Assembly: GCA_028534125.1 (NCBI GenBank)
Contig: CM052850.1
Span: 26,040,001-26,104,000, forward strand
DNA from: Lama glama
Taxonomy: Eukaryota
DNA length: 64,000 bases
Reading direction: 5' to 3'
The translations under genes and the position numbers were made by a program. Below are positions 7,501 through 22,900 of the stretch, piece after piece (position 1 is the stretch's first letter; every line of letters begins with the position of its first letter). The notes under the pieces are model-generated. The model saw nothing but the letters and a program-made list of their open reading frames with translations, did no database searches and was not told the DNA's origin.

Positions 7501-10500
7501 TCGTGCTGGTGAGCGGAACCCGGTCAGAGCGGCCCCATCCAGCCCTTCCCGCCAGGGGCCTGGGGCTGGGGGGTACCTTCTTATTGCAGCCCCGGCAGGG
7601 CGCCTTGCAGGATGAGAGCTGCTTCTCCACGTGGGTGGCCTTGTCCACCTTCTTGGGGTCGAAGGGCAGGCGGCAGAGCGGGCACAGGGGGGACGGCACC
7701 TGCAGGCAGGGCTGGAGGCACTCCCCGCAGAACCTGTAGGGGCGGGACATGGGCCTGAGGGCTGCGGCTCACTCTGGCAGCGGTCACTCTGCCTGAGTCC
7801 TGCTGGCTGGTCAGACGCCATCTGGCTAAAAGGTGACCCCAGGTCCCCACCGAGCTGTGGGCTTTGAGACCCCGGCTGGACCCTGCGATGCAGGCCGAGC
7901 TGTGGCTGTGGCTCCCCAGGTCCCGAGCTGGCCCCACAGCCCTGTGCCAGCAGCAGCTCTCGCTGCAGAAGGTGGCCCAGGGCTCAGCCTACCAGTCTCA
8001 CTGCCACGTGGTGATGACACCACCTCAGGGGGCTCCAGGACAGCATGGGGGACCCTGGAGACCCTCCACCTACTAAGCTCTGGCAAGTAAAATCACTAAC
8101 AGTGGCAAGAGAGGAAACCACAGGGCCCCAGGGCTGCGGACTCATTGGATGAGGCAGGGCCAAAGTTGGCCGGGTGAGTGCCACCAACCTGGGGACAGTG
8201 CCCTCGCCCCACTCAAGAAGGGCTCTGGCTTGGCCAGAGCAGAGGCATGGTGACAGAAGGGGTGGTGCCCGGGCCCCCCTGCCCCGGCTCCATTTGGCCC
8301 TGTCCCTGGAGATGTTGTGTCATGAGGGACGAGGGTAAATGAGGGAACAGGATCTCCCTAAAGCCGTTTGGTGAGGCCCAGGAGTGCACTTGGGACAAGC
8401 CATTGTGGGCCTCGGGTTGGGGCGCAGGGTGCCCCAGTGGGAGGAGACAGAAAAGCTTGATGTCTCGAGAAGCAACACAGCCCTGCCTGACCTAGCCTCC
8501 TGGCCCACCCGCAGGTCTCGTGTCCCTCCCTGAGTAGATGGAGGCGGGATCAGGTGTCCACGCAGCACCTGGCCTGCGGCCTAGTTTCCAGCACCACCTC
8601 GCTGGCCCCCAACGCCCGCCGGCCCCAGGGGCCGGCGCCAAGCAGCTTTTCAGCTGGAGGCCCACGGGCACCGCCAACACACCTCACTCTTGGCCCAGCC
8701 TCCTACATGCACAGCTGCACCAGTGACCTGGGAAAGCTGGCAGGCTGGGCGGTGCCTGGAGCCATCCTGAGCCTTTTCTGGGAGGGCTTCTAATCGCTCA
8801 TGTCCTGGCCCCCTGTCTCGGCTCACTCAGGCACAGACACAGGTGAGCCGCCCATGGGCCCAGGCCTCTCAGGAAGCAGAGTGCAGTGACAGAGGCCCGG
8901 GATCCTGAGCACAGAAGCCAGCTCACTGGCCTGACTGCAGCCCGGCAGGGGGCTGGAAACGCTCTGCTGCAGGAGCGTGGGGAGCTAAGGGGTGGGCACA
9001 GCTGCTGAAGGTGACGAGGGGAGACTGGCCAGGGCCTGGCAGCCTTGCCAGGAGGCGTGGGAATTCCACTCAGCCTCTCTGATCCCATTTTCCTTGTACA
9101 AAAAGAATCATGTAGCATCTGCCTCCCAGGACCTCTGAACAGGGAGGATTCAGAAAACGTCTGTTATCACTGTTCCCAACAGGTCCCCTTAAACATGAGC
9201 ATCTTAATGTTCTTCAACCTCTGTTCATTAACAGACAGCATGAGGGGACACTCAGGCGGGGAGACAGATGTGACACGCTGACCAGAGAGAATGACACAAG
9301 AGGTGCAGAAGCCGGAGGCAGCCAGGATAAAGCCGCAGCCAGGACAGAGCCCCACCCCAAACATACACTGGCCCTCGGGGGAGGCTTCCTCAGAGGGTTA
9401 AAAACAGCTGGGTAGCGTCTGGTTCTGGATGTGGCTCACTGCCCAGGGTGTCCCCTGACTGTGACAGTTAACTGGCTCCCTCTGGGGCCCTGGGGAGTTC
9501 CTGGGAGCGCTTTTACAATACCTACCAGCGGCCTCCTGCCAGAAAGCCCTCCCTACAACCTGGCCCCTCTGCCTGGTGCTGGAGCAGAAGTGCCGGTCCC
9601 GGACAGGGCTGCTCTCACCATCAGAAAACGTGTCTTGTGGAAAGAAACTGCTTCCAGTCAGAGAGCCATGGAGGGACAGAATCAGGCCACCAGCAAACCT
9701 TGTAAAAGGAGAGGCACAACCCTCGGAGTCTTTTTTTGTTCATCTGTGCACATGCCTTTGAAACACTGGACAAGAAACTTAGGGAAAGTGAAAGGCAGAG
9801 ACAGAGCAGCCAGGAGGTTTGTTTACGCCTGCAGGTAGAACCAGGGAGAAGGTCTTTTTAAGGGAGAAGCTGAAGAGGTTCCTCCAGAACTAACCTTAGA
9901 AACGGAAAGAGAGGTGTCAGATTCTGCCAAGAAAAGCATGGGGCGGGGGGTTTGTAGATCAAGCTTTCACAACAACTTCTGTAGTTCTGTAATGTGAAAA
10001 CCACCTTTTAAGAAAAGACTGATTTGGAAAAAAAGGGAGAGAAAACAGATTTGTGCTGACCAGGAGACCCGAAACACCACATTCCGGGGCTGGGGGAGTG
10101 TTGGTACCAACCCAAAGCCTCGGAAAGGCTTTCTAAAAGCAGGCCTGGGACATGCCCTACACGTCTCTCAATGATAGGCTGGAAGATGCTAAACATACCT
10201 TAAAACACCCACTTACAAGAGAGAAGTGTTGTTCAGAGGCCACCCCTGCCGAAAGGTCACGAACAGCACGAGAAAGCAGGCAAAGCACCCTTGAGGCAGT
10301 CTCCCGGTGTGGGCACGTGCCTGGGCTGCTTGTCGGCACGTGTGTGTATGTGTGCACGCGTGTGTGCGCTTCCCGGCTCCGGACACCATCCCTGCTGCCT
10401 CCCTGGGTGATGAGCGTTACACACACACCCAAGCAGTTCCAACTCCCTGCTCCCTCTTTGTATCAGGAACCTCGTAGGTCAGATACCTCTGTTTGCAAAA

Positions 10501-11458
10501 TGTTCCAGGGCCTCCTACCAGCCTGGGTGCACCTCGGCCCCACCTCCTCCGCAGCGCTGCTGGCATCCAAGCCCTCCTGCCCCCTCTCTCCACCCTGCTA
10601 ATTTCACTCAAGAGCTGTATTATTCAGCGCTAGGGAGAGTTGCAGAGCAGACACTCTGATCTCGGCCTCCTCCCAACCAGGCTGGCAGCTCCCAGACTTG
10701 AGTGAAGCTCTTGGCTAGGAGAAGAGCCACATCCTCATGAGTCTGTTCCTGAAACAACCCAGCCATGGCACAGATGGAAACCCTAGCAAGGTGTGTGGCT
10801 TCTGGTATCCCGAGGGCCAGCCTGCCTGCTTGCTCAGTGACCGATGTGATCCAAGTTCTCCATCAAAACAAAATAGCACCAGACTTCAAACAAGCCGATG
10901 CCTAAACTTTAGGGAACTTCTCTCCTCTGCAGTCAAGACAAGCAGACAGCGGATTCGAAAAAGAGTTGACAGCAAAAGTCACAAGTCATTTATTTACCTC
11001 TGCCCACTCAGTCTCCACGAAATCAGATCGAAGGCAACCGGCGCAGAGGTCGCGCCCGCTGCCCTCTGAGTCCCCAGGGAGGCCCGCCGAGGCCGTCAAC
11101 GGCCCCCGGGCACCGGAGACCGGGCAAGGCTGCAGATCGGCCCCATATGCCGACCTGGGGGTCGGATCGAATACCCGGGGCGGGCGGGCAGGAGGCTGGG
11201 CTGAGGCGGATGGATGCAGAAAAGGCGCTGCGTGGGGAGTCTGCAGAGCCCTTCCCCGCGGCGGCGCCCGACCCCGCGGCCTCCCGGAGGCCGGCGCACT
11301 CACGTGTGGCCGCAGCTGCCGATGGCCACCGGCCGGTGGTAGACCTCCAGGCAGATGGGGCAGCTGTACTGCGCCTCCAGGCCGCTGTCACCGCCCGCGG
11401 GCCCGCCAGGCGGCTGCCGCTGCTGAGCCGAGGCCACCAGGCTGCGGAACATCGCCAT
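4555..11458 (-). CDS. RNF166: E3 ubiquitin ligase RNF166 (RING-HC, C2HC, C2H2/Di19 zinc fingers, C-terminal UIM), 237 aa, spliced
   Basis: Coding exons (minus): 11304-11458, 7577-7733, 6103-6215, 5605-5719, 5409-5516, 4555-4620. All introns are GT-AG and phases are consistent; total 714 nt. Peptides: [150 protein letters not shown]-stop. Confidence 0.97.
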
Positions 11459-12700
11459 CCCGGGCCCGGTCCGCGCCGCCGCCCCTGTCCTGTCCTGGCC
11501 CGGCCCGGCCCGGCCCGGCCTGCGTGTAACGGCCGCGACGGCGCGGGGTTGACGTAACGAGCGCCCGCCCCCGGCCCGCGCGTCACGGCCGCGCCGGCTC
11601 CTCGGTGACGTAGTCAGGGAGCGCCGGCCGTCGGCTCGTGCGTCACGGCCAGGCCGGCGCCTCGGTGGCATAGTCAGGAAGCGCTGGTGTCTCTGTGACG
11701 TAGTCAGGAAGCTCCCGCCTCTGGCCCTTATGTCACTGAGTACCGGCGCATCTGTGACGTTGCCAGCGAGCGCTCGCCGGCGGCCCAAGCTTCACAGAAT
11801 TCCGAAGCCTCTGTGACGTAATCAGGTTCACCGGCGTCTCAGTGACGTAATCAGGGAGCAGCGGTACATCTGTGACGTAGCCAGGGGCGCCGGCGTCTTA
11901 GTGATGCAATCAGCGAGCACTCTCCCCCGTGCGTCACGGGTTGCCGGCGCCTCTGTGACGTATACACCGAGCGCCGGCGCGCCTTTGATGTATTCAGAGA
12001 GCCCGCCCCGCCCTTGTGTCATGGGATTCTGGCACTTTTGTGACGTATTCAGGGAGCGCCGGCGTCTCAGTGACGTAACAAAAGAGCGCCTGCCCCCTAG
12101 TCCCCGGCGCCGCTGTGACGTAATCAGGGAGCGCCCGCCCCGGCCCGTGCATGAGTCTCCGGCGCTTCGGTGATGTAATCAGGCAGCGCTGGTGTCCCTG
12201 TCAGGTAGCCTGGAAGCACCCGTCCCCCGGTCCGTGCGTCACGGCGTGCCGGCGCCTCTGTGACGCAATCAGGGAGCGCCAGTACCTCTGTGACGTAGTC
12301 AGCGGCCGTCCATCCCCGGCCGTGCGTCACGGGGCTCCGGCGATTCGGTGACGTAGTCAGGGAGCGCCCGCCCCTGGCCTGTGCCTCACGTGGCGCCGGC
12401 GCCTCAGTGACGCAGTCAGGGTGCGCTCCGCCGCCGCGTACAGAGTAAGCCGGCGCAACCATGTGCGAGGTGGGCGAGGACTACCGTGCGTCCGCGCCCG
12501 AGGAGCCGCCGCTGACACGACCCGGGTAAGAGCTGGGCGGCCGTTCCCGCCGGCGGCGAGCCCTGTCTCGAGGGTCCAGCCCGCGTTTTTCCGTCAGTCC
12601 CGGGGGCCGCGCTCCGGGAAGCCCGGGTAACCCCGAGGGCGGGGCCCAGGAGCCCTGGAGTCTCAAGGCGGGGGCTGGACCTCGCTCCGCAGCACCCAGG
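11020..12700. promoter_or_regulatory. CpG island / bidirectional promoter shared by RNF166 and CTU2
   Basis: Very CpG-dense. Contains RNF166 exon 1 (ATG 11458, minus) and CTU2 exon 1 (ATG 12461, plus), GC boxes and many TGACG sites. Confidence 0.9.
11545..12422. repeat. Degenerate minisatellite of ~30-bp and ~55-60-bp units, consensus ~GTGACGTA(A/G)TCAGGGAGCGCCGGCGCCTCT
   Basis: Cores start at 11550, 11606, 11666, 11696, 11755, 11814, 11843, 11873, 11902, 11956, 11986, 12041, 12071, 12116, 12171, 12201, 12261, 12291, 12349, 12408. Long units carry an inverted CGTCAC (11581, 11641, 11932, 12237, 12325). Confidence 0.9.
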
Positions 12701-15700
12701 GAGTGTCTGTCAAGCCAGCGGTGAAGCCCCAGGAAGGAGCTCCATCTGCGCGCTTGCACCTCCAATTCGTGTAGCCAGTGGGGCAGGTCCGCCGCTGACC
12801 AAGCTGTCTACTCTTACAGGAAAGTCGGCCTTTTTGTCGCTTCCACTCGCTGGCTCCATTCCTCTCCAGGATCGCACAGAGCAAGTTATCTCTTGTTGTC
12901 TCGGCCCTTGAGAAACTGAGTTGGTCTTTACGTGCCCACTGAGCCAACTTTAACAGGCTGTAGTCTTCCTAGGGCCTTGGTTTTTCCTCACAGTGGTAGT
13001 GTAGATAAGTTACAAGCCCTGGTTTGTGTGGTGCAGCCTGCCATATGATCTCTCTAGTACACCAGCGTGGGGTGGAAAACAGGCCACCGTGTGCCTGACG
13101 CCCCTGGGAGGGGGTGTAATCTGTGTTCTTGTTCTCTTCCCCTCATGTCTCCAAAGCCGTGAGCAGAAGTGTGTGAAGTGCAAGGAAGGCCCACCTGTGG
13201 TGGTGATTCGAGCAGGAGATGCCTTCTGCAGGTGAGGCCTGGCGTGAGGAGACCCAGCAAACGCAGCCTCATTCAGCAGCCACAACTGCCACGGTTTCTG
13301 TGGCTTTGTTTCTTGCCTTTGAAAGCATCTCGTCACCTTGCCCTTGCTTGTAACGTTCTGGTGCTGTGTGTGTGGAGGGGGATTGGTTTCCTGATCGGCT
13401 TTCTGAGTACCACTACATCGTCGAGCTGTGCCACAGGTGACAGGAAGACACTGATGAAGCTCATGGGGAGAGTTGGGAGTGAAAGTGGTCTGTGGTGCAG
13501 GCGAGGTGAGCTTTTCTGGGGCAGCTGGAACACATCAAGGGCAGATTAGAGCGTCCTGGCGTCTCTGGCAGGCGCTCCAGGTGATACCTGTTTTACTTGT
13601 GAGAGATGGTGGGGTGGAAGGAGGGCCCCAGCCTCCCCTCGCTCTGGGGGCCTCTGGACAGGAGCAGAGAGGCCTGTTCCCAGAGACGCCTGGGCGTGAG
13701 CGTGTTCCATTATATCTGAAGCGCTCTTGTGGCCCTGTGAGATGCCTTTGAATCCTAACTCGGCCAGTGTCTGAGCACGTTCACTGGCTCATAGCTCCCC
13801 GAGGGCAGGGCCCGTCTCCGGTTTTATCCCTGTTCCTGGTGGCACTGCAGGCTCTGTTACAGCATTGAGTACTTCGTGAGTGAGCAACTGGCTCACGTTT
13901 TAAATTGGTCTCCAAGAGTATTGGATTCTGTTTTGTGGATGTTTCCCGAAGAGAAACTGAAAGGACTGAATAAGTTGTCTTCCCAAAACGTTCTGGTCTC
14001 TGCCCACCTCTTAGGTGTCCAGTGAGCTTGGTGTGTGTCTCCAGGATACATTTTAAGCAAAAAAGCCACTGCTTTAACCACTTAAGAGCATCTAGAAATG
14101 TCGATCTTTGCAGTCTGTTTCCAGGTCCACAGCCCCCCTGCCCGTGCTTGCTTGGTCCAGAGAAAAAGTGGGAAACTGGTCTGGGCAGCAGGAATCTAGG
14201 TTTTGAGCAGGTTTTCTCAGTGAAGGTGAGGGTCCTGGTCTCGCCTGACTTGCGGGAGAGAGTGGTCTCAGGAGTCCGGCAGGGCAGGGAGGATGCCGAT
14301 GCAGCAGCCCCAGGGCCCCCGTGCATGCTGGGAGCACCTGTGTCTGCTGAAGGAGCCTACCCGGCCCTGACCTGGGAGTCACTCCTGTGGCTGGTCACCT
14401 GGGGCCCTGGCATTTTGCCGTTAGGCACTGAATTGAGTTACTGCACACAAAGGCCTGTTGGGTGTTTGGTGTTGGGGGACAGCATGTCTGGACAGGAAGC
14501 AGGAAGTAGACTTGGGGGTCCTGGGCAACGTTCTCCACCTTGGCTGCCTGCTGGGGTTGCTGGGAAACTTAAACCTGTGGGATCCTGGGCCTCACCTGAC
14601 ACACCCTGATGTTGCCGGACTGAGTAATTCTGATGTGGGGCCAAGGCCAACAGCCTCTGACCTAGTCAGCTAGAAGGTTTACCAAGAATGCAGAGTCCCA
14701 GGCCCTGCCCTGGAAGTTGTCATCCTCTGTGTTTGTGGGAGCCTCCCAGGCATTTCTGGTCCAGATGGTCTCACCACACGAGAGGCCAGTGTGAGGCTTT
14801 AGGACACTCGTCGCTTGACCCCACAGCCTGCTCAGTGCTTGCCCTGTACCCCCAAAGGTGGTGTGCTTCCCTCTGGGGCTCCGGGACGGGGTCACCTGCT
14901 CTGCTTAGGGAAGGGTCGGGGTGGCCTTGCCCTGTATGAGCCTGTGTCCATCCGCCCATCTCTCCCACTAGCTGGCCCTTCCCCAGGGCTGCAGTGCAAG
15001 TGGTGCCTGGGCCCCCGGCCCCTCAGGCAGTGGTTCACACTGGTTACAAGTGGGGGGGCGGGGACCTAAGCAGGCCTCCCCGTGTAGCATGGGGCTCCTT
15101 GTGGGGCAGCCACAGCTGGTGAGAACCCCTCAGCTTCAGATCTCCTCAGGGCTGAGACAGTGCTTTTTCTTGCTTACTCAGTGGAGGTATACTGGGGATT
15201 GAACCCAGAACCTCACGTGCGCTAGGTAGGCACTCTGCCGCTGAGCTGCACACTCCCTCCGAGACACTGCTTTTACAGCTGACTTTGCTGAAAGAAAACA
15301 TTGCTTGGCAGAGCCTCGGGCTGCAGCCCCACACGTGGGGCCCAGCGCTTCCCTGTCCTGGTGGCAGCTGGTGGTCGAGGCCCTGTTGCCACAGCTCCTG
15401 GTGGTCTGTATTACAGGGACTGTTTCAAGGTGTTTTACGTCCACAAGTTCAGGGCCATGCTTGGAAAGAACCGACTGATCTTTCCGGGAGAAAAGGTAGG
15501 GTATGGGGCACCTCTTCCTGCACGTGGCCTGTCCCAGCCACACCCCTCCAGCCCCTCCCCTGCGCACACCTGTGGGTTATGGGGACGGACTCATGTCTGG
15601 GAGGGATGTCCATGGGCAGCGTGGGCCTTCATGTTGTGGGTGCAGCGTCTCCAGCGATGTTCTGTCTCCCCCAGGTGCTCCTGGCATGGTCCGGGGGACC

Positions 15701-18700
15701 TTCGTCCAGCTCCATGGTCTGGCAGGTCCTGGAGGTGAGTCTCTACCTCTTCCTGCACCCAGGATGCCATCTGGCCAAGTTCCAGGGTCGGGGGCTGGCA
15801 CTGACAGCCCACTCCCCAGCTGGGAGCCCAAGGGTCATGCAGGAGGCGCACGACCTGGAAGCTGTGTCCCAGCTTGGCACCGTCCCTTTGCTTGACTATG
15901 ACTGGCTGGAAAATGGGTGTGGCACCTTGGCAGAGTGATGCTTGAGGTGTTTTGGGGGCGTCAAGGGGATGGGCCCTGGTGTGGGTCACGTGGCTTCCTT
16001 GAGAAGATACAGGGGAGGCCCGCATGCGCAGGGGTGCTACTGGGTGGGGTGCAGGTATGAGCCGGGAGCACAGCTCAGGTCTAGGCTGGTGGGGAGTGTG
16101 GGGCTGTGCCCAGTGCATCCCCAGGCCCAGCTCAGGGCATTGGAGGCAAGTGGGCTCCTGCTTACGGCAAGGGGACACCTTGGAGACCTTGCTCAGGGTG
16201 TGACACACAGACCCCTGCACTGACTCCCGGTGTGGGGCCACGGTGTGATCTGTACCAGGGGTTCCGGGCAGTGCAGTGCTTCTGTGGTTGGCTTTCTGCT
16301 CTCACCTCACCGTGCCCTGAGCCTGGGCTGGTGGTATGAGGCCGGCGCCCCTCCCCAGCTCCTCGCCGTGCCCTGAGCCTGGCCTGGTGGTGTGAGGTCG
16401 GCGTCCCTCTCCAGCTCCTTGCCGTGCCCTGTGCATTGCTCTCCCCTCAACCAGAGACACCTCGTTTCTGTTGTACTGTCTGTTTCTCTGAGCAGTCTGA
16501 GGGGCTCAGGCAGGGGCTTGGGGAGCATGTGGAACCCAGCTGCCTCTCTGGGGATGTTGCTGGGAGGCTGTCAAGGGCAGGGTTCACTTGTGGGGCTCCT
16601 GCGCTCCCGGCGGGGCTGCTCTGAAGCACGTCGTCCTGCTGTGCGCTCTCCACCACTCCCCCTGGCCTCCCTGGCACCCGGGCTGAGCGGCCTGACCAGC
16701 GCAGTCCAGGAGGGTACTCTTTCCAGACAGGGAGCAGACCATCAGCAGCGCCTTGTGGCTTCTGGCCGCAGAGCTGAAGTCCTGTCCTGTCCCCTCCAGG
16801 GCCTGAGTCGAGATTCTGCCAAGAGACTGCGTTTTGTGCCAGGAGTCATCTACGTCGACGGTACGTGTCTGTATCTGTCCCCAGGCCCTGGCGCTCGGGG
16901 CGGCCCCTCCAACTGCTGGCACTGGGCTTGTGCAGGGCCCTGGTGGGGGCGTTCCCCTGGACTTAGCGCCCGGATTCAGCAAAACGCCCTGCTTTTGTCT
17001 GAGGTCTCACCACGGGGCCAGGGGCACTTGGTGAGAACTCCGAATGCACAGCCAGAGGGGGCCTTCCCACCCCACTGTCAGAGAACCCACTACCCTGAAA
17101 ACGCCCCCAAGGAGACGGCTTGGCCCCCAGCGGCCTCGAGAGGACTTGCTGCCCACCCCTCCACGGGCACAGTGGTGGCGGCCCTGACCGCCCGCGTGCG
17201 CCTCTTCTGTAAAGTGGTTACTCTGCATTTTCCAGAGGGAGCAGCCTGTGGCCGGAGCCCCGAAGACAGAGCCAGAACTCTGGTGGAGGTAGAGCAAGTC
17301 CTGCAGAATGTCGGCTTCCCGAGCCATGTCATCGCCTTGGAAGAGGTGGGCGGCCCATCCCTGCTCAAGAGCCCTGGAGGTGCCTGTTCAGTGTCCACAG
17401 GGCCAAAGGCCTGCTTCCCCACGTGGAGGGCCGGGCCTCACGCTCTCCCCATCCACCCGCCAGGTGTTTGGCTTGCCGCCGTCTGTGCTACGCTGCTTTG
17501 CCCGGGAGCCAGAGTCGGTGGGGACCGAGGGTGCCTACAAGGCGGCCGTGGACAGTTTCCTCCAGCAACAGTGTGTGCTGGGGGCAGGGGGGGAGGAGCC
17601 CTGGAGCCAGCCCCGCCCCCAGGGCCCCCAGAGTCTGGCCGGGCCCCCCACAGCTGTGCAGACTGAGGCTCTGTCCAGACTGTTCGATTCAGTGAAGACG
17701 CTGACGGCCAAGGAGGAGCTTCTGCAGACACTGCGGTGAGCCCCCTCCACTGCCCCGGGGTCCCTTCCTGACCGCCCCCACCAAGTTCCTGAGACCTTCT
17801 CTTCCCTCCCCCCGGGGTCCTGGTCCTACCCACCCTGAGATTCCTGCCGTGCTCTGCAGGACCCACTTGATCCTGCACGTGGCCCGGACTCATGGCTACT
17901 CTAAGGTGATGGCGGGGGACAGCTGCACCCGCCTGGCCGTGAAGCTCATGACCAGCCTGGCACTTGGGAGAGGGGCCTTCCTCGCCTGGGACACGGTGTG
18001 CACACGGCTGCTCTGGCCCCACCCTCACCCTTCTGTCCCCTGTCACTTGATTCATGAAGTGGTCCTGGGGTCTCCCACGGGGTGGGGGTGGGGCCAAAGA
18101 CCCCCCGCCAGCTGGCAGGGAAAGAGAGGAGCTGTGAGCCAGTCAGCTGAGTGTCCTGAGGAACGCTGTTCCCCCAGGGCTTCTCGGACGAGCGGCATGG
18201 TGATGTGGTGGTGGTGCGGCCAATGCGTGAGCACACGCTGAAGGAGGTCGCCTTCTACAACCGCCTGTTTGCCGTCCCGTCTGTCTTTACACCGGCCGTC
18301 GACACCAAGGTGGGCTGGGGTCGGCGGGGTGGCCTCCACCTGGTGCCCCAGTGGAGCGCACACTAGGGGGACAGACTTGAGGAAGGGGGTGCCCGTTGGG
18401 CGTCACAGAGGTGGGCGAGGGGACAGTGGGACAGGATGACCTGTGTTGGGTGCTTTATTTAACAGCATCTGTGCTTGACAGTGAGGGCTCTCTAGAAGTG
18501 GTGGCCCCCTAGAAGTGGTGGCCCCTGAACAGGCCTGGGGGCTGCCCCTCTGACCGGGGCCCCCAACCCGTCTGCTCCAGGCCCCCGAGAAGGCCAGCAT
18601 CCACCGGCTGATGGAAGCCTTCCTGCTCAGGCTGCAGGCCCAGTTCCCCTCCACCGTCAGCACCGTGTACAGGTGTGTGTGTGTGGGTGTGTGGGCTCCA

Positions 18701-19944: not shown

Positions 19945-22900
19945 CTACTCCTTCTCACGGGTCCACTTGATCATGGTCTCGGGTGAGCGGTAAAGGAAGA
20001 TGAGCTTGGCGTACAGCTCCTCCTCCAGCTCCAGCTCCTGCGTCTCCCGCACCAGGAAGATGTCCTGGCAGAGCTTAAGGATGCGGTCCACGCACGGCAA
20101 CTCCTCGAACATGATGGAGTGCGAGATTTCGCTGAAGAAGCCACGCACAAACTTGCCGATGACCAGCACGATGGACACGTAGAGACCCATGATGCTGCGG
20201 GCGGGCGGGTGGGCAGTGAGAGTCCGGCCTCCTCCCTGGCCCCGCCCCGGCCTGGCCCGCTGCACGCCGCACTCACCCGTAGCCTGCCAGGAAGCCCAGG
20301 CTGGGTGGGCTGACCTTGTCACTGAAGATGACCATGGGCAGCAGGTTGCATTTGGCTCGGCAGTCTTGCAGCTCGATGACCCACCACTCGAGGAAGCCAG
20401 CTGCCCCCGAGCCCACACGCTCCCTGCGCAGCTGGACGCGCACACTGAGGTAGTCAGCCTCCTCCTCTGGGTGGGAACCAGGAGGTGTCACGGTCCCTAC
20501 CCGTCCCAGGCTGAGGCCAGCACCCCCACCCCCATGTCCCCACCTCACTCACTGGGCTGTAGCTGTTTCACGGGGTTGGCTTCAGGTCCGTTGGGGGCAC
20601 GGATGTACTTAGGGAAGAGGTGGGGGATGACCCTATAGGGAGGAGGCCAGAAGGTCAGGCCTGGCCCTGCCCCCCACCATGGCCCCCCCGCCCACCCCCT
20701 ACTCACACGGACTGGTCGGAGGTGCCCTCCAGCAGGCTGGCCAGCTGCCGCCGGGCGGTGCTGTTGGGGGTTAGGTCCAGAGTGTGCTTCTCATTGGTGT
20801 ACTCCACAGTGCCGCCCTTGGCCAGGTCCCTGGGGCAGGGGTGCTGTGTGACCCTCAGTGTAGCTGGGTGGCCCCTGATCCCCCCTCCCCTGGAGCCTGG
20901 ACGCACCTCTGGAAGTTCCAGGTGAGGCGCAGGGTGATGTCGGCGGTGCCATTGTGCAGCTCACGCTTCATCTGCGCCCGGCTCGGTGGGCTGATGCGCC
21001 ACAGCGCCCCGGAACTGCCCTCAATGTGCGCTGTGACGATGTCCTCGGGGCTGTACTGGCTGATGAACTGCATGGCCAGCTGGACGTGGGGGGCAGCCAC
21101 CTCAGCGGGGCAGCCCGGCCCCCCCAACCCCCACCCCTGGCAGCCGCATGTGGCGGGGGCACTCACTGGGTCGCGGTCAAACTGCCGGGACAGTTCCTCA
21201 TAGGCCTGGGCGGTGAAGGGCACGATGGATGGCTGCTGGGCGCTCATGGTGAACAGGGGCTGGTGGTGGGGACGCAGTGATGTGGCGCCGGGGCCTCTGG
21301 ACCCCAGGCCACCAGCGTCACACAGAGCCCCTCACGATCTCGAGGGGAGGGCACCTGAGGTGGGGGTGAGGCTGCTCACCTCGTAACCGCCCAGCTTGAG
21401 GGTGACAGTGACGTCGATGGGCTGGTTGACGACCCCGACCACAGAGCGCACCAGGGACATGAAGAGCAGCGGGAACCAGATGATGGCCACCAGGAACAGG
21501 ATGATCAGGCCACCCATGCCATACTTGACCACCTTCTTCTTCTTCTGCCCCTTGGGCTGTGGGTATCTCTGGGGGGCAGAGGGGGGATGCAGGTCACCCG
21601 CCAAGTGGGCCTCTGTCCTTACGTGGCCCTGCAGAGCCAGACCCACGTGGGGACCAGGTGCCCAGGCCACCCAGAGGGAAGGATGGCCGGACACCCACAC
21701 GCCGAAATGTGAAGTTGGGCCTTCAACCCTCGGCCAGAGTGAACTCAAACAGGAGACCAAAAAACGGTGAAACTCTTCAGGGCAAATCTGTCTGAAAGAA
21801 CCTAGTGTGCAAGCTCCAGAAAGAACTCTCACAACGGTGAGATACCACCCGGTGAAGACCTGGCGAAAACCTCAACAGACACTTCTCCAGACAAGCTACG
21901 CAAGCGGCCAAGCACAGGAAGGGGCCTGGCGCCAAGACTGGAGCCCCCACACGGCCCCACCCGTCCCTGGACGCCGAGCCCGGGGGTGGAGGGGCTGGCA
22001 CCACAGCCACTCTGAGCTGTGTACCCAGGAGCCATGGGGACCTATGGCCGCGGCTCTGGACGGAATGGCCACAGCAGCATCTCTCACAGCTGAGACTTGT
22101 CACAATGGAAAGCTACTCAGCTGTGAAGAGAATTCTGACACAACTGCAAGGTGGGTGCGCCTGGAGAGCGCCGTGCTGCGAGAGGGAAACAGTCACCAAA
22201 GGCCACGTGCCGTGTGCTGCCGTGCATGTGGGACACCGGGGATGGGCAAGTCCGCGTGGGGGGGGTGGCTGCCAGTGTGAGTGGGGCTGCTTCCTGTGCA
22301 GCGGGCGTGCAACCCTGGGTGCACTAGGAACCACCCAGCTGTGCACGGTACAGGGGCAGCTGCGTGAATTACAACAGTAGCTGCTAAGAAACACTTGGTT
22401 CATGTTTTACCGTGCACCCTGCTCCCCATGCCTGTGACTGGGGGCCCTCTCTGTGGGTGGCCGCCCTGACATGGCCGAGTCCACCGTCCCCTCGAGGAAG
22501 CCCCTTCTGGCCATCAGGAAGTTTCAGAGGCATGCACTGGACGCACGCTGGTGTGGGCAGCAGCCGGCCCTCACCTTCTCTGTCTCGCGGCTGCACTTGA
22601 TGATGAAGATATTGGCGTAAATGTCCTCCACGCACATCCAGCTGGACAGGGACAGCGTGGTGTCCGTCCACACCCAGTCCATCACAGCCCGCAGCTCCAC
22701 CAGGAAGGGCACCAGCCGGAACCTGCGCGAGGCCGGGGACCATCAGGAGGGCCCGAGGGAGGGCTGCCCTGCCCCCGGCGCCCGGGCCAGCCACGCTCAC
22801 CCCTGGAAGAGGAACAGGTTGAGGTGGTTGTACTTCTTGGTGAGGAAGTTGCCGAGGATGCGGGTGGGGTAGCCACAGCGGATCTGGTAGGCCGACAGGG

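Follow-up and report, generated by a model that had tools for sequence, protein, structure and literature searches.

A tandem array of GTGACGY-type sites fills most of the interval between the divergent RNF166 and CTU2 genes of the llama

The 30-bp variable number tandem repeat (VNTR) upstream of MAOA and the VNTR of INS consist of GC-rich, head-to-tail units that carry transcription factor sites and are thought to scale promoter output. Among viruses, the 21-bp Tax-responsive repeats of human T-cell leukaemia virus type 1 (HTLV-1) and bovine leukaemia virus (BLV), and the 19-bp cyclic AMP response element (CRE) repeats of the cytomegalovirus major immediate-early enhancer, act additively. Here we describe an array of CRE-like half-sites in a 64,000-nucleotide stretch of the genome of Lama glama (assembly GCA_028534125.1, contig CM052850.1, positions 26,040,001 to 26,104,000 of the forward strand; hereafter the window, whose own numbering is used below). 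The array lies between two head-to-head genes, RNF166 on the minus strand (ATG at 11458) and CTU2 on the plus strand (ATG at 12461), whose start codons are separated by 1002 bp. It would join the known promoter minisatellites made of factor sites, and would be unusual among them in being old, derived from a core promoter, and situated between two divergent genes. We give a probability of about 0.6 to the reading that it is an old, in situ tandem amplification of the core of the ancestral RNF166–CTU2 bidirectional CpG-island promoter, with repeat cores that are probably still bound by a factor and activate both genes. Our literature search found no paper on a repeat in the RNF166–CTU2 promoter.

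The array (11549-12436, plus strand) is an imperfect 30/59-bp tandem repeat of 20 units, which Tandem Repeats Finder reports in overlapping rows with periods of 30 and 59/60 bp and 70-83% matches. When the units are anchored on the 14-mer GTGACGTAGTCAGG, with 5 mismatches or fewer, 20 forward cores are obtained, starting at 11549, 11605, 11665, 11695, 11754, 11813, 11842, 11872, 11901, 11955, 11985, 12040, 12070, 12115, 12170, 12200, 12260, 12290, 12348, and 12407. Their spacings (56, 60, 30, 59, 59, 29, 30, 29, 54, 30, 55, 30, 45, 55, 30, 60, 30, 58, and 59 bp) are identical to those listed in an earlier note on this DNA (the original prediction), whose array of 20 cores is thus real. Head-to-tail units of ~10-100 bp in many copies define a minisatellite, and the array is one. 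Ten units are long (54-60 bp), nine are short (29-30 bp), and one is of 45 bp, in the order L L S L L S S S L S L S M L S L S L L S (L, long; S, short; M, 45 bp). Both predicted unit sizes are therefore present, the long one with inverted sites, but the two do not strictly alternate. Nor is the short unit more than approximately three helical turns in length; 30 bp corresponds to 2.86 turns, and strict helical phasing was rejected on this ground.

A long unit comprises the core, then GAGCGCC, a GC box, the inverted 9-mer GCGTCACGG, and CCGGCGCCTCT, as judged from the unit alignment. The short unit is a long unit minus an internal stretch of ~29 bp that is flanked by GCGCC on both sides, which looks like the product of a microhomology deletion. 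Exact TGACG is found in 15 of the 20 cores; the remaining five are degenerate (GTGGCATA, GTGATGCA, TTGATGTA, GTGATGTA, and GTCAGGTA), four of them through CpG transitions. Five CGTCA motifs, all within GCGTCACGG (GTGACGC on the minus strand; 11580-11588, with the same 9-mer at 11640, 11931, 12236, and 12324), sit inside long units. They are additional to the 20 forward cores, so that the original prediction was right in its motif totals but not in counting the inverted sites among the 20. Two pairs of short-plus-long blocks resemble each other (11654-11717 and 12159-12222, 81% alike; 11927-11997 and 12232-12302, 79% alike), and part of the growth would therefore have occurred by block duplication. 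Counted strictly, the repeat covers 89% of the 1002-bp interval, and 94% when a degenerate extra long unit is included (11503-11562, plus strand), which is 68% identical to the unit at 11559-11618 and whose inverted core has decayed to GCGTGTAACGG; that the array fills most of the interval had been correctly foreseen. The 21-mer consensus of the unit has no further match in the 64-kb window. No inverted repeats of 30 nt or longer were found, and a hairpin or cruciform was rejected accordingly.

The enrichment of sites is far beyond that expected from composition. Between 11545 and 12422 there are 15 TGACG and 5 CGTCA half-sites, each with a central CpG, where 2.5 ± 1.5 are expected and the maximum in 2000 dinucleotide-preserving shuffles is 9. 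The heptamer TGACGTA occurs 12 times in the array (0.06 expected), which is 12 of the 15 copies in the entire window. Nineteen of the 20 TGACG/CGTCA sites (14 forward and 5 reverse) read GTGACGY, for which 0.46 are expected and of which the other 63 kb hold 10. Five of the cores have the form TGACGTAA and seven the form TGACGTAG or TGACGTAT. By comparison, a motif scan of the interval revealed no ETS, NRF1, YY1, NFY, or E2F motifs, and there is no TATA box (TATAWA) from ATG to ATG. If the interval is the promoter, the repeats are what the promoter consists of.

That the unit is itself a piece of promoter is indicated by the same interval in other mammals. The CATG palindrome at the CTU2 start codon (12460-12463) provides an ATG on both strands, and gene callers consequently emit spurious reading frames, rich in R, G, and A, that lead in the direction of RNF166, such as P0013, P0017, and P0079 in other mammals and the open reading frame (ORF) 12124-12462 (minus strand) in the window. 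The array likewise misleads ORF callers into R/G/A-rich frames on both strands. These read-through frames are usable as a proxy for the orthologous promoter DNA, and our comparison employs those found on genomic contigs of other mammals on the RNF166 strand; exon-1 word searches showed mammalian genomic ORFs of this locus to be very scarce in the protein collection. A word search there with an ORF made up of array sequence only (12127-12462, minus strand) gave no match, but the array ORFs of the window are themselves absent from that collection. P0079 (241 residues) aligns by tblastn with the window from 12702 to 12313 (E 1e-10), its SSPTWHM falling on the SSPTSHM of the window (12460-12480), which is the reverse complement of the CTU2 start. 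From the CTU2 start to Met1 of RNF166 it has 62 codons, a gap of 184 bp versus 1002 bp in the llama window. In P0013, from the same 90% cluster, there are 51 codons (151 bp), and in P0017 there are 40 (~118 bp), provided that its first Met is the same CATG. The original prediction, which put the two starts only a few hundred bp apart in human and proposed a lineage-specific promoter minisatellite, is supported by these three values insofar as the interval is much shorter in the mammals concerned. Of 78 cluster representatives, only Eptesicus fuscus (the big brown bat) has the same exon 1 as P0079 and P0013, and the human-labelled entries differ from it, so these are probably bat sequences; P0017, whose exon 1 resembles a rodent type, is a probable rodent.

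The peptide TS[AP]R[RS]RRGRDA[RL]AG, which in translation corresponds to a single long unit, from its core through the GC-rich spacer to the inverted core, is found once each in P0079, P0013, and a titi-monkey isoform, P0020. Because the long unit is present once in the interval of other mammals, it would represent an ancestral promoter segment that was amplified in situ. Insertion of a foreign repeat or transposon was rejected because of the homology of the unit to a promoter that other mammals have in single copy. Further, the short state occurs both in a laurasiatherian (the probable bat) and in euarchontoglires, and the expansion should therefore postdate the split from bats; it appears to be lineage-specific relative to the species compared (probable bats, a probable rodent, and the titi monkey). 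What distinguishes P0079 from P0013 is a block of 9 residues (27 nt), SDDVTESRP, with a GTGACGT core, and to judge from these translations one short unit has been gained or lost in a short promoter of ancestral type as well.

Within the llama array, the cores have diverged less than their surroundings. Over the eight positions of the core GTGACGTA, 13 of 160 bases (8%) mismatch the consensus, versus 103 of 420 (25%) at the other ungapped unit positions (odds ratio 0.27, Fisher p 4e-6). The core is thus about three times better conserved than its flanks over all 20 units, the central ones included, and a CAG three bases past the core is conserved in addition. This suggests that the cores are constrained, as would fit continued binding of a factor to sites that are still used. 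The CpG observed/expected ratio is 0.9-1.3 along the array, which is the level of a CpG island, and a ratio of ~1 points to long-term hypomethylation in the germline. Divergent genes with a common CpG island characterize bidirectional promoters, and both are found here (GC content 0.6-0.84, CpG observed/expected ~1); towards mid-array, GC content falls to 0.59-0.63.

The transcripts of both genes probably start in the outer units of the array. In RNA libraries of three studies, the share of 31-mers of the interval that is found reaches 0.31-0.35, which fits 5′ untranslated regions (UTRs) that reach into the outer units. An ATG on the minus strand at 11671 lies 213 nt upstream of Met1 of RNF166, in frame and with no intervening stop, and on the plus strand ATGs at 12151 and 12173 open upstream ORFs. 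To judge from these upstream ATGs, transcription would begin within ~210 nt of the RNF166 start codon and within ~290 nt of that of CTU2. In a bidirectional promoter the transcription starts are less than 1 kb from each other; the two ATGs here are 1002 bp apart. A transcript that started upstream of 11671 would encode an RNF166 with a 71-residue N-terminal extension translated from array units.

The array itself is old. Mean similarity between units is 75% and the closest pairs are 90-91% alike; because the units are 9-35% diverged, the array is not a young one, and at neutral mammalian rates the last duplications would be tens of millions of years old. The same divergence makes its 31-mers unique, so that their presence in independent data supports the whole path of the array. 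Per-run short-read assemblies contain every one of the 99 31-mers sampled from 11459-12460. In fourteen DNA runs with 4 organism labels 95-100% of them are found, and in four runs that bear no flag as a possible source (four studies, three organism labels) 95-96%, although such shares cannot exclude gains of single units. GC-rich tandem repeats are prone to assembly errors, but a repeat collapsed or inflated in assembly would hardly recur in this manner, with at least 95% of its words in independent short-read assemblies from several studies, and we regard an artefact as very improbable indeed. The near-complete sharing of words among the 14 runs also agrees with the array not being young; from run to run the array seems stable, unlike a young, hypervariable VNTR.

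These observations can be combined in a single course of events. The ancestral module, ~59 bp in length, would have combined a GC box with two sites, one forward and of GTGACGTA type, the other an inverted GTGACGC. Other mammals, whose interval is about 120-190 bp, would have retained it once, or two to three sites altogether. In the lineage of the llama, unequal exchange or replication slippage would have multiplied this module. An internal deletion of 29 bp between GCGCC microhomologies would have produced the 30-bp short unit, and renewed duplication of short/long blocks would have brought the array to 20 units, pushing the start codons 1 kb apart. The GTGACGY cores may still be bound by a basic leucine zipper (bZIP) protein of the CRE/ATF family or by an E4F1-like factor and, together with Sp1-type GC boxes, could serve as redundant, constitutive proximal activator sites for both genes, with transcription probably starting in the outer units on each side.

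Several points weigh against this account. Anchoring the units on the core somewhat inflates the apparent conservation of the core, although no 30- or 59-bp slot is left unexplained. Of the 20 units, 15 retain the CpG of the core, no more than retain the other CpGs of the unit (13-16 of 20), and the conservation signal therefore comes from non-CpG positions. The conserved 3′ extension, nTCAG, matches no factor that we can name, and the palindromic CRE (TGACGTCA) has 0 occurrences in 11459-12460. The 0.31-0.35 share of RNA words could include contaminating DNA. In the comparison, the species of the read-through frames are assigned by exon-1 identity alone, and the intervals compared come from outside the artiodactyls, so that the expansion may be restricted to camelids or be wider among artiodactyls. 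Finally, a mean unit divergence of 25% would, at neutral rates, predate the split from bats; either the ancestral sub-units were already diverged, or the local mutation rate has been raised.

The array might, alternatively, be a neutral by-product of slippage or unequal exchange, in which promoter function is confined to one or two units at either end, adjoining the genes, and the inner units are a tolerated spacer that splits one promoter into two. Such a history would account for the strong divergence of the units, for the five decayed cores (four by CpG transitions), for the dip in GC content in mid-array, and for the restriction of RNA words to about one-third of the interval; moreover, two to three sites were enough in the ancestral state. 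It accords less well with the threefold better conservation of the core in all 20 units, central ones included, with CpG island character throughout, and with the scatter of the decayed cores, which are not confined to the centre. We consider it possible, but decidedly less probable than an amplified promoter whose cores are still in use. The original prediction placed far more weight on the units, as a multimerised CREB/ATF element, tuned by copy number and methylation and polymorphic between individuals, through which the output of RNF166 and CTU2 would be set. The twenty half-sites (TGACG or CGTCA, all with a central CpG) are certainly there, and CpG methylation blocks CREB binding. Some runs contain just 95-97% of the words, leaving room for small differences, and the two related, probable bat sequences differ by a 27-nt, core-bearing block. 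However, even the closest units are 9-10% apart, so that no recent duplication is visible, and at least 95% of the words recur in each of the 14 runs (4 organism labels), which speaks against tuning by copy number; a CpG observed/expected ratio of ~1 across the array, indicative of a long-unmethylated germline state, speaks against tuning by methylation. The half-sites of the proposed CREB/ATF element are thus real, but it has neither a full palindromic CRE nor a TATA box, and we think the model as a whole quite unlikely. Marginally less unlikely is a view in which each long unit, with its two opposed GTGACGY sites around a GC box, is a full ancestral bidirectional core promoter. The array would then amount to some ten mini-promoters, firing both ways from many dispersed starts and kept by selection for tens of millions of years to raise or buffer the output of RNF166 and CTU2.

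If the cores of an amplified promoter are indeed still bound, the question is by which factor, and CREB/ATF would be one candidate of several. Promoters with cAMP-inducible CREs have a TATA box nearby, and a TATA-less context speaks against strong cAMP inducibility. The sites might instead be used by a factor outside the CREB/ATF group, either the zinc-finger protein E4F1 or dimers of C/EBP and ATF4 on the TGACGTAAT and TGATGCAAT variants. For E4F1, the 5′ G is kept in 18 of 20 cores, all five inverted sites read GTGACGC, and 19 of 20 sites conform to GTGACGY, which belongs to the promoter motifs conserved in mammals (#20 of Xie et al.) and carries the annotation E4F1 (PMC1702496); its MSigDB set is named in PMC2887512. 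E4F1 also directly controls Elp3, which acts in the same U34 tRNA modification pathway as CTU1/2 (PMC11696611). For ATF4, a published table gives TGACGTAATC a score of 0.91 against the JASPAR ATF4 matrix (PMC8532826). A C/EBP-ATF composite element (CARE) would read TGATGNAAT or be a near hybrid of it, and the array has four copies of TGACGYAAT and two of TGATGNAAT (11902 and 12171), a minority of its units. Variants of the core that resemble C/EBP-ATF (amino-acid-response) elements are TGATGCAAT (11902-11910, plus strand), from a CpG-to-TpG transition, and TGATGTAAT (12171-12179, plus strand), from a CpG-to-TpG change. On the other side, the extended E4F1 decamer, taken here to be GTGACGTAAC after the adenovirus E4 literature, is mostly absent: there is one exact copy (12070) and one near copy, TTGACGTAAC (11549), position 10 is T in 14 of 20 units, and the conserved 3′ part is nTCAG, not AAC. 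Our literature search found no paper that gives the decamer in its text, and the E4F1 papers searched do not name CTU2 or RNF166 in the main text. Use of the sites by such other factors is therefore rather doubtful in our estimation, if somewhat less so than the mini-promoter view. Were the ATF4 reading true, CTU2, a gene for tRNA wobble thiolation, would be tied to E4F1–Elongator or amino-acid-response programmes. A CTCF-like reading of CAGGGAGCGCC was rejected, as key positions, judged by eye, are absent.

The interval contains several other features. Its GC boxes are six in all, one at 11565-11570 on the minus strand (CCGCCC on plus, GGGCGG on minus) and the others at 11479, 12003, 12008, 12135, and 12368. 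The only E-box, CACGTG at 12387-12392, is formed where the last long unit has GCCTCACGTGG as its inverted core. Directly upstream of the RNF166 ATG is a GC-rich, non-repeat stretch (11459-11496), a probable 5′ UTR, whose translation in the reading frame is common to P0017 and P0083 of other mammals. It is followed by a (GGCCC) x4.8 microsatellite (11497-11520, Tandem Repeats Finder), which lies between the RNF166 ATG and the array and overlaps the decayed GC-box part of the degenerate first unit. On the other side, 24 bp of non-repeat sequence (12437-12460) precede the CTU2 ATG.

The flanking genes are those that had been named in the original prediction, as borne out by translations, exon-1 identity, and tblastn. 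The coding part of RNF166 exon 1 (11304-11458, minus strand) begins with Met1 at 11458 and ends at a GTGAGT donor from 11303; its translation is 100% identical to exon 1 of cetaceans, pig, and felids and has a RING-finger Pfam match. Further RNF166 exons were located by tblastn, each exon being searched singly. Over several exons Camelus ferus is the nearest representative, with three residues differing, and in RNF166 intron 1 a stretch at 9882-9998 (minus strand) has 82% protein identity to an alternative exon of the Camelus ferus RNF166 isoform X1 (P0015, residues 51-89), as fits a camelid other than the wild camel. The coding part of CTU2 exon 1 (12461-12525, plus strand) starts MCEVGEDY and is followed by a GTAAGA donor, and later pieces of CTU2 exons are in the ORF list at 13026-13235, 15301-15738, and 15285-15938. 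An ORF at 19945-20445 (minus strand) contains a conserved C-terminal part of PIEZO1, the next gene beyond CTU2, in tail-to-tail orientation. The only matches to RNF166 exon 1 in a metagenome scan were a teleost locus and a spurious GC-rich one (L002). The teleost locus (MDSQ01098478.1, 684-869) is a teleost-like RNF166 exon 1 on a 2.2-kb contig among metagenome records, with AT-rich sequence and no CRE cluster upstream.

In general, the array illustrates how a promoter can be enlarged through in situ duplication of its own sequence. Should the extra units be active, the locus is a natural experiment in which the same two conserved housekeeping genes have two to three sites in some mammals and ~25 in another, and it would reveal the effect of site number and promoter length on a bidirectional CpG-island promoter. 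If the units act as mini-promoters, it would be a case of regulation evolving by multiplication of the whole promoter instead of by the addition of enhancers. If they are inert, it is an old, tolerated minisatellite in a promoter; and if polymorphic, it would be a useful length marker.

Set beside the known systems with which we began, the array resembles the MAOA and INS VNTRs in consisting of GC-rich, head-to-tail repeats of tens of base pairs, with factor sites, just upstream of a gene. Those repeats, however, are young, polymorphic in copy number, and attached to one gene each, whereas the llama array has 20 diverged units, is apparently stable, and would be derived from a core promoter between divergent genes. 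With the viral CRE-type repeats it has in common multiple imperfect TGACG-type cores, tens of base pairs apart, in GC-rich flanks; but the viral repeats number 3-5 copies, interspersed, at a TATA promoter, in contrast to 20 tandem copies in a TATA-less cellular CpG island that lacks TGACGTCA. Synthetic reporters with 4-6 CREs similarly iterate one site at short, regular spacing, yet they combine palindromic CREs with a TATA box and respond to cAMP, whereas the cores here are half-sites or variants (TGACGTAA and TGACGTAG) with no TATA box. In the usual GTGACGY promoters the motif occurs once or twice; here 19 of 20 sites fit it, the longer decamer is mostly lacking, and E4F1 is only a candidate binder. 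The closest likeness in layout is to mammalian bidirectional CpG-island promoters, with their head-to-head genes, common CpG island, GC boxes, and CRE-type sites. From these the llama interval differs in being without the typical ETS, NRF1, YY1, and NFY motifs and in its length, the two ATGs standing 1002 bp apart versus about 120-190 bp in other mammals.

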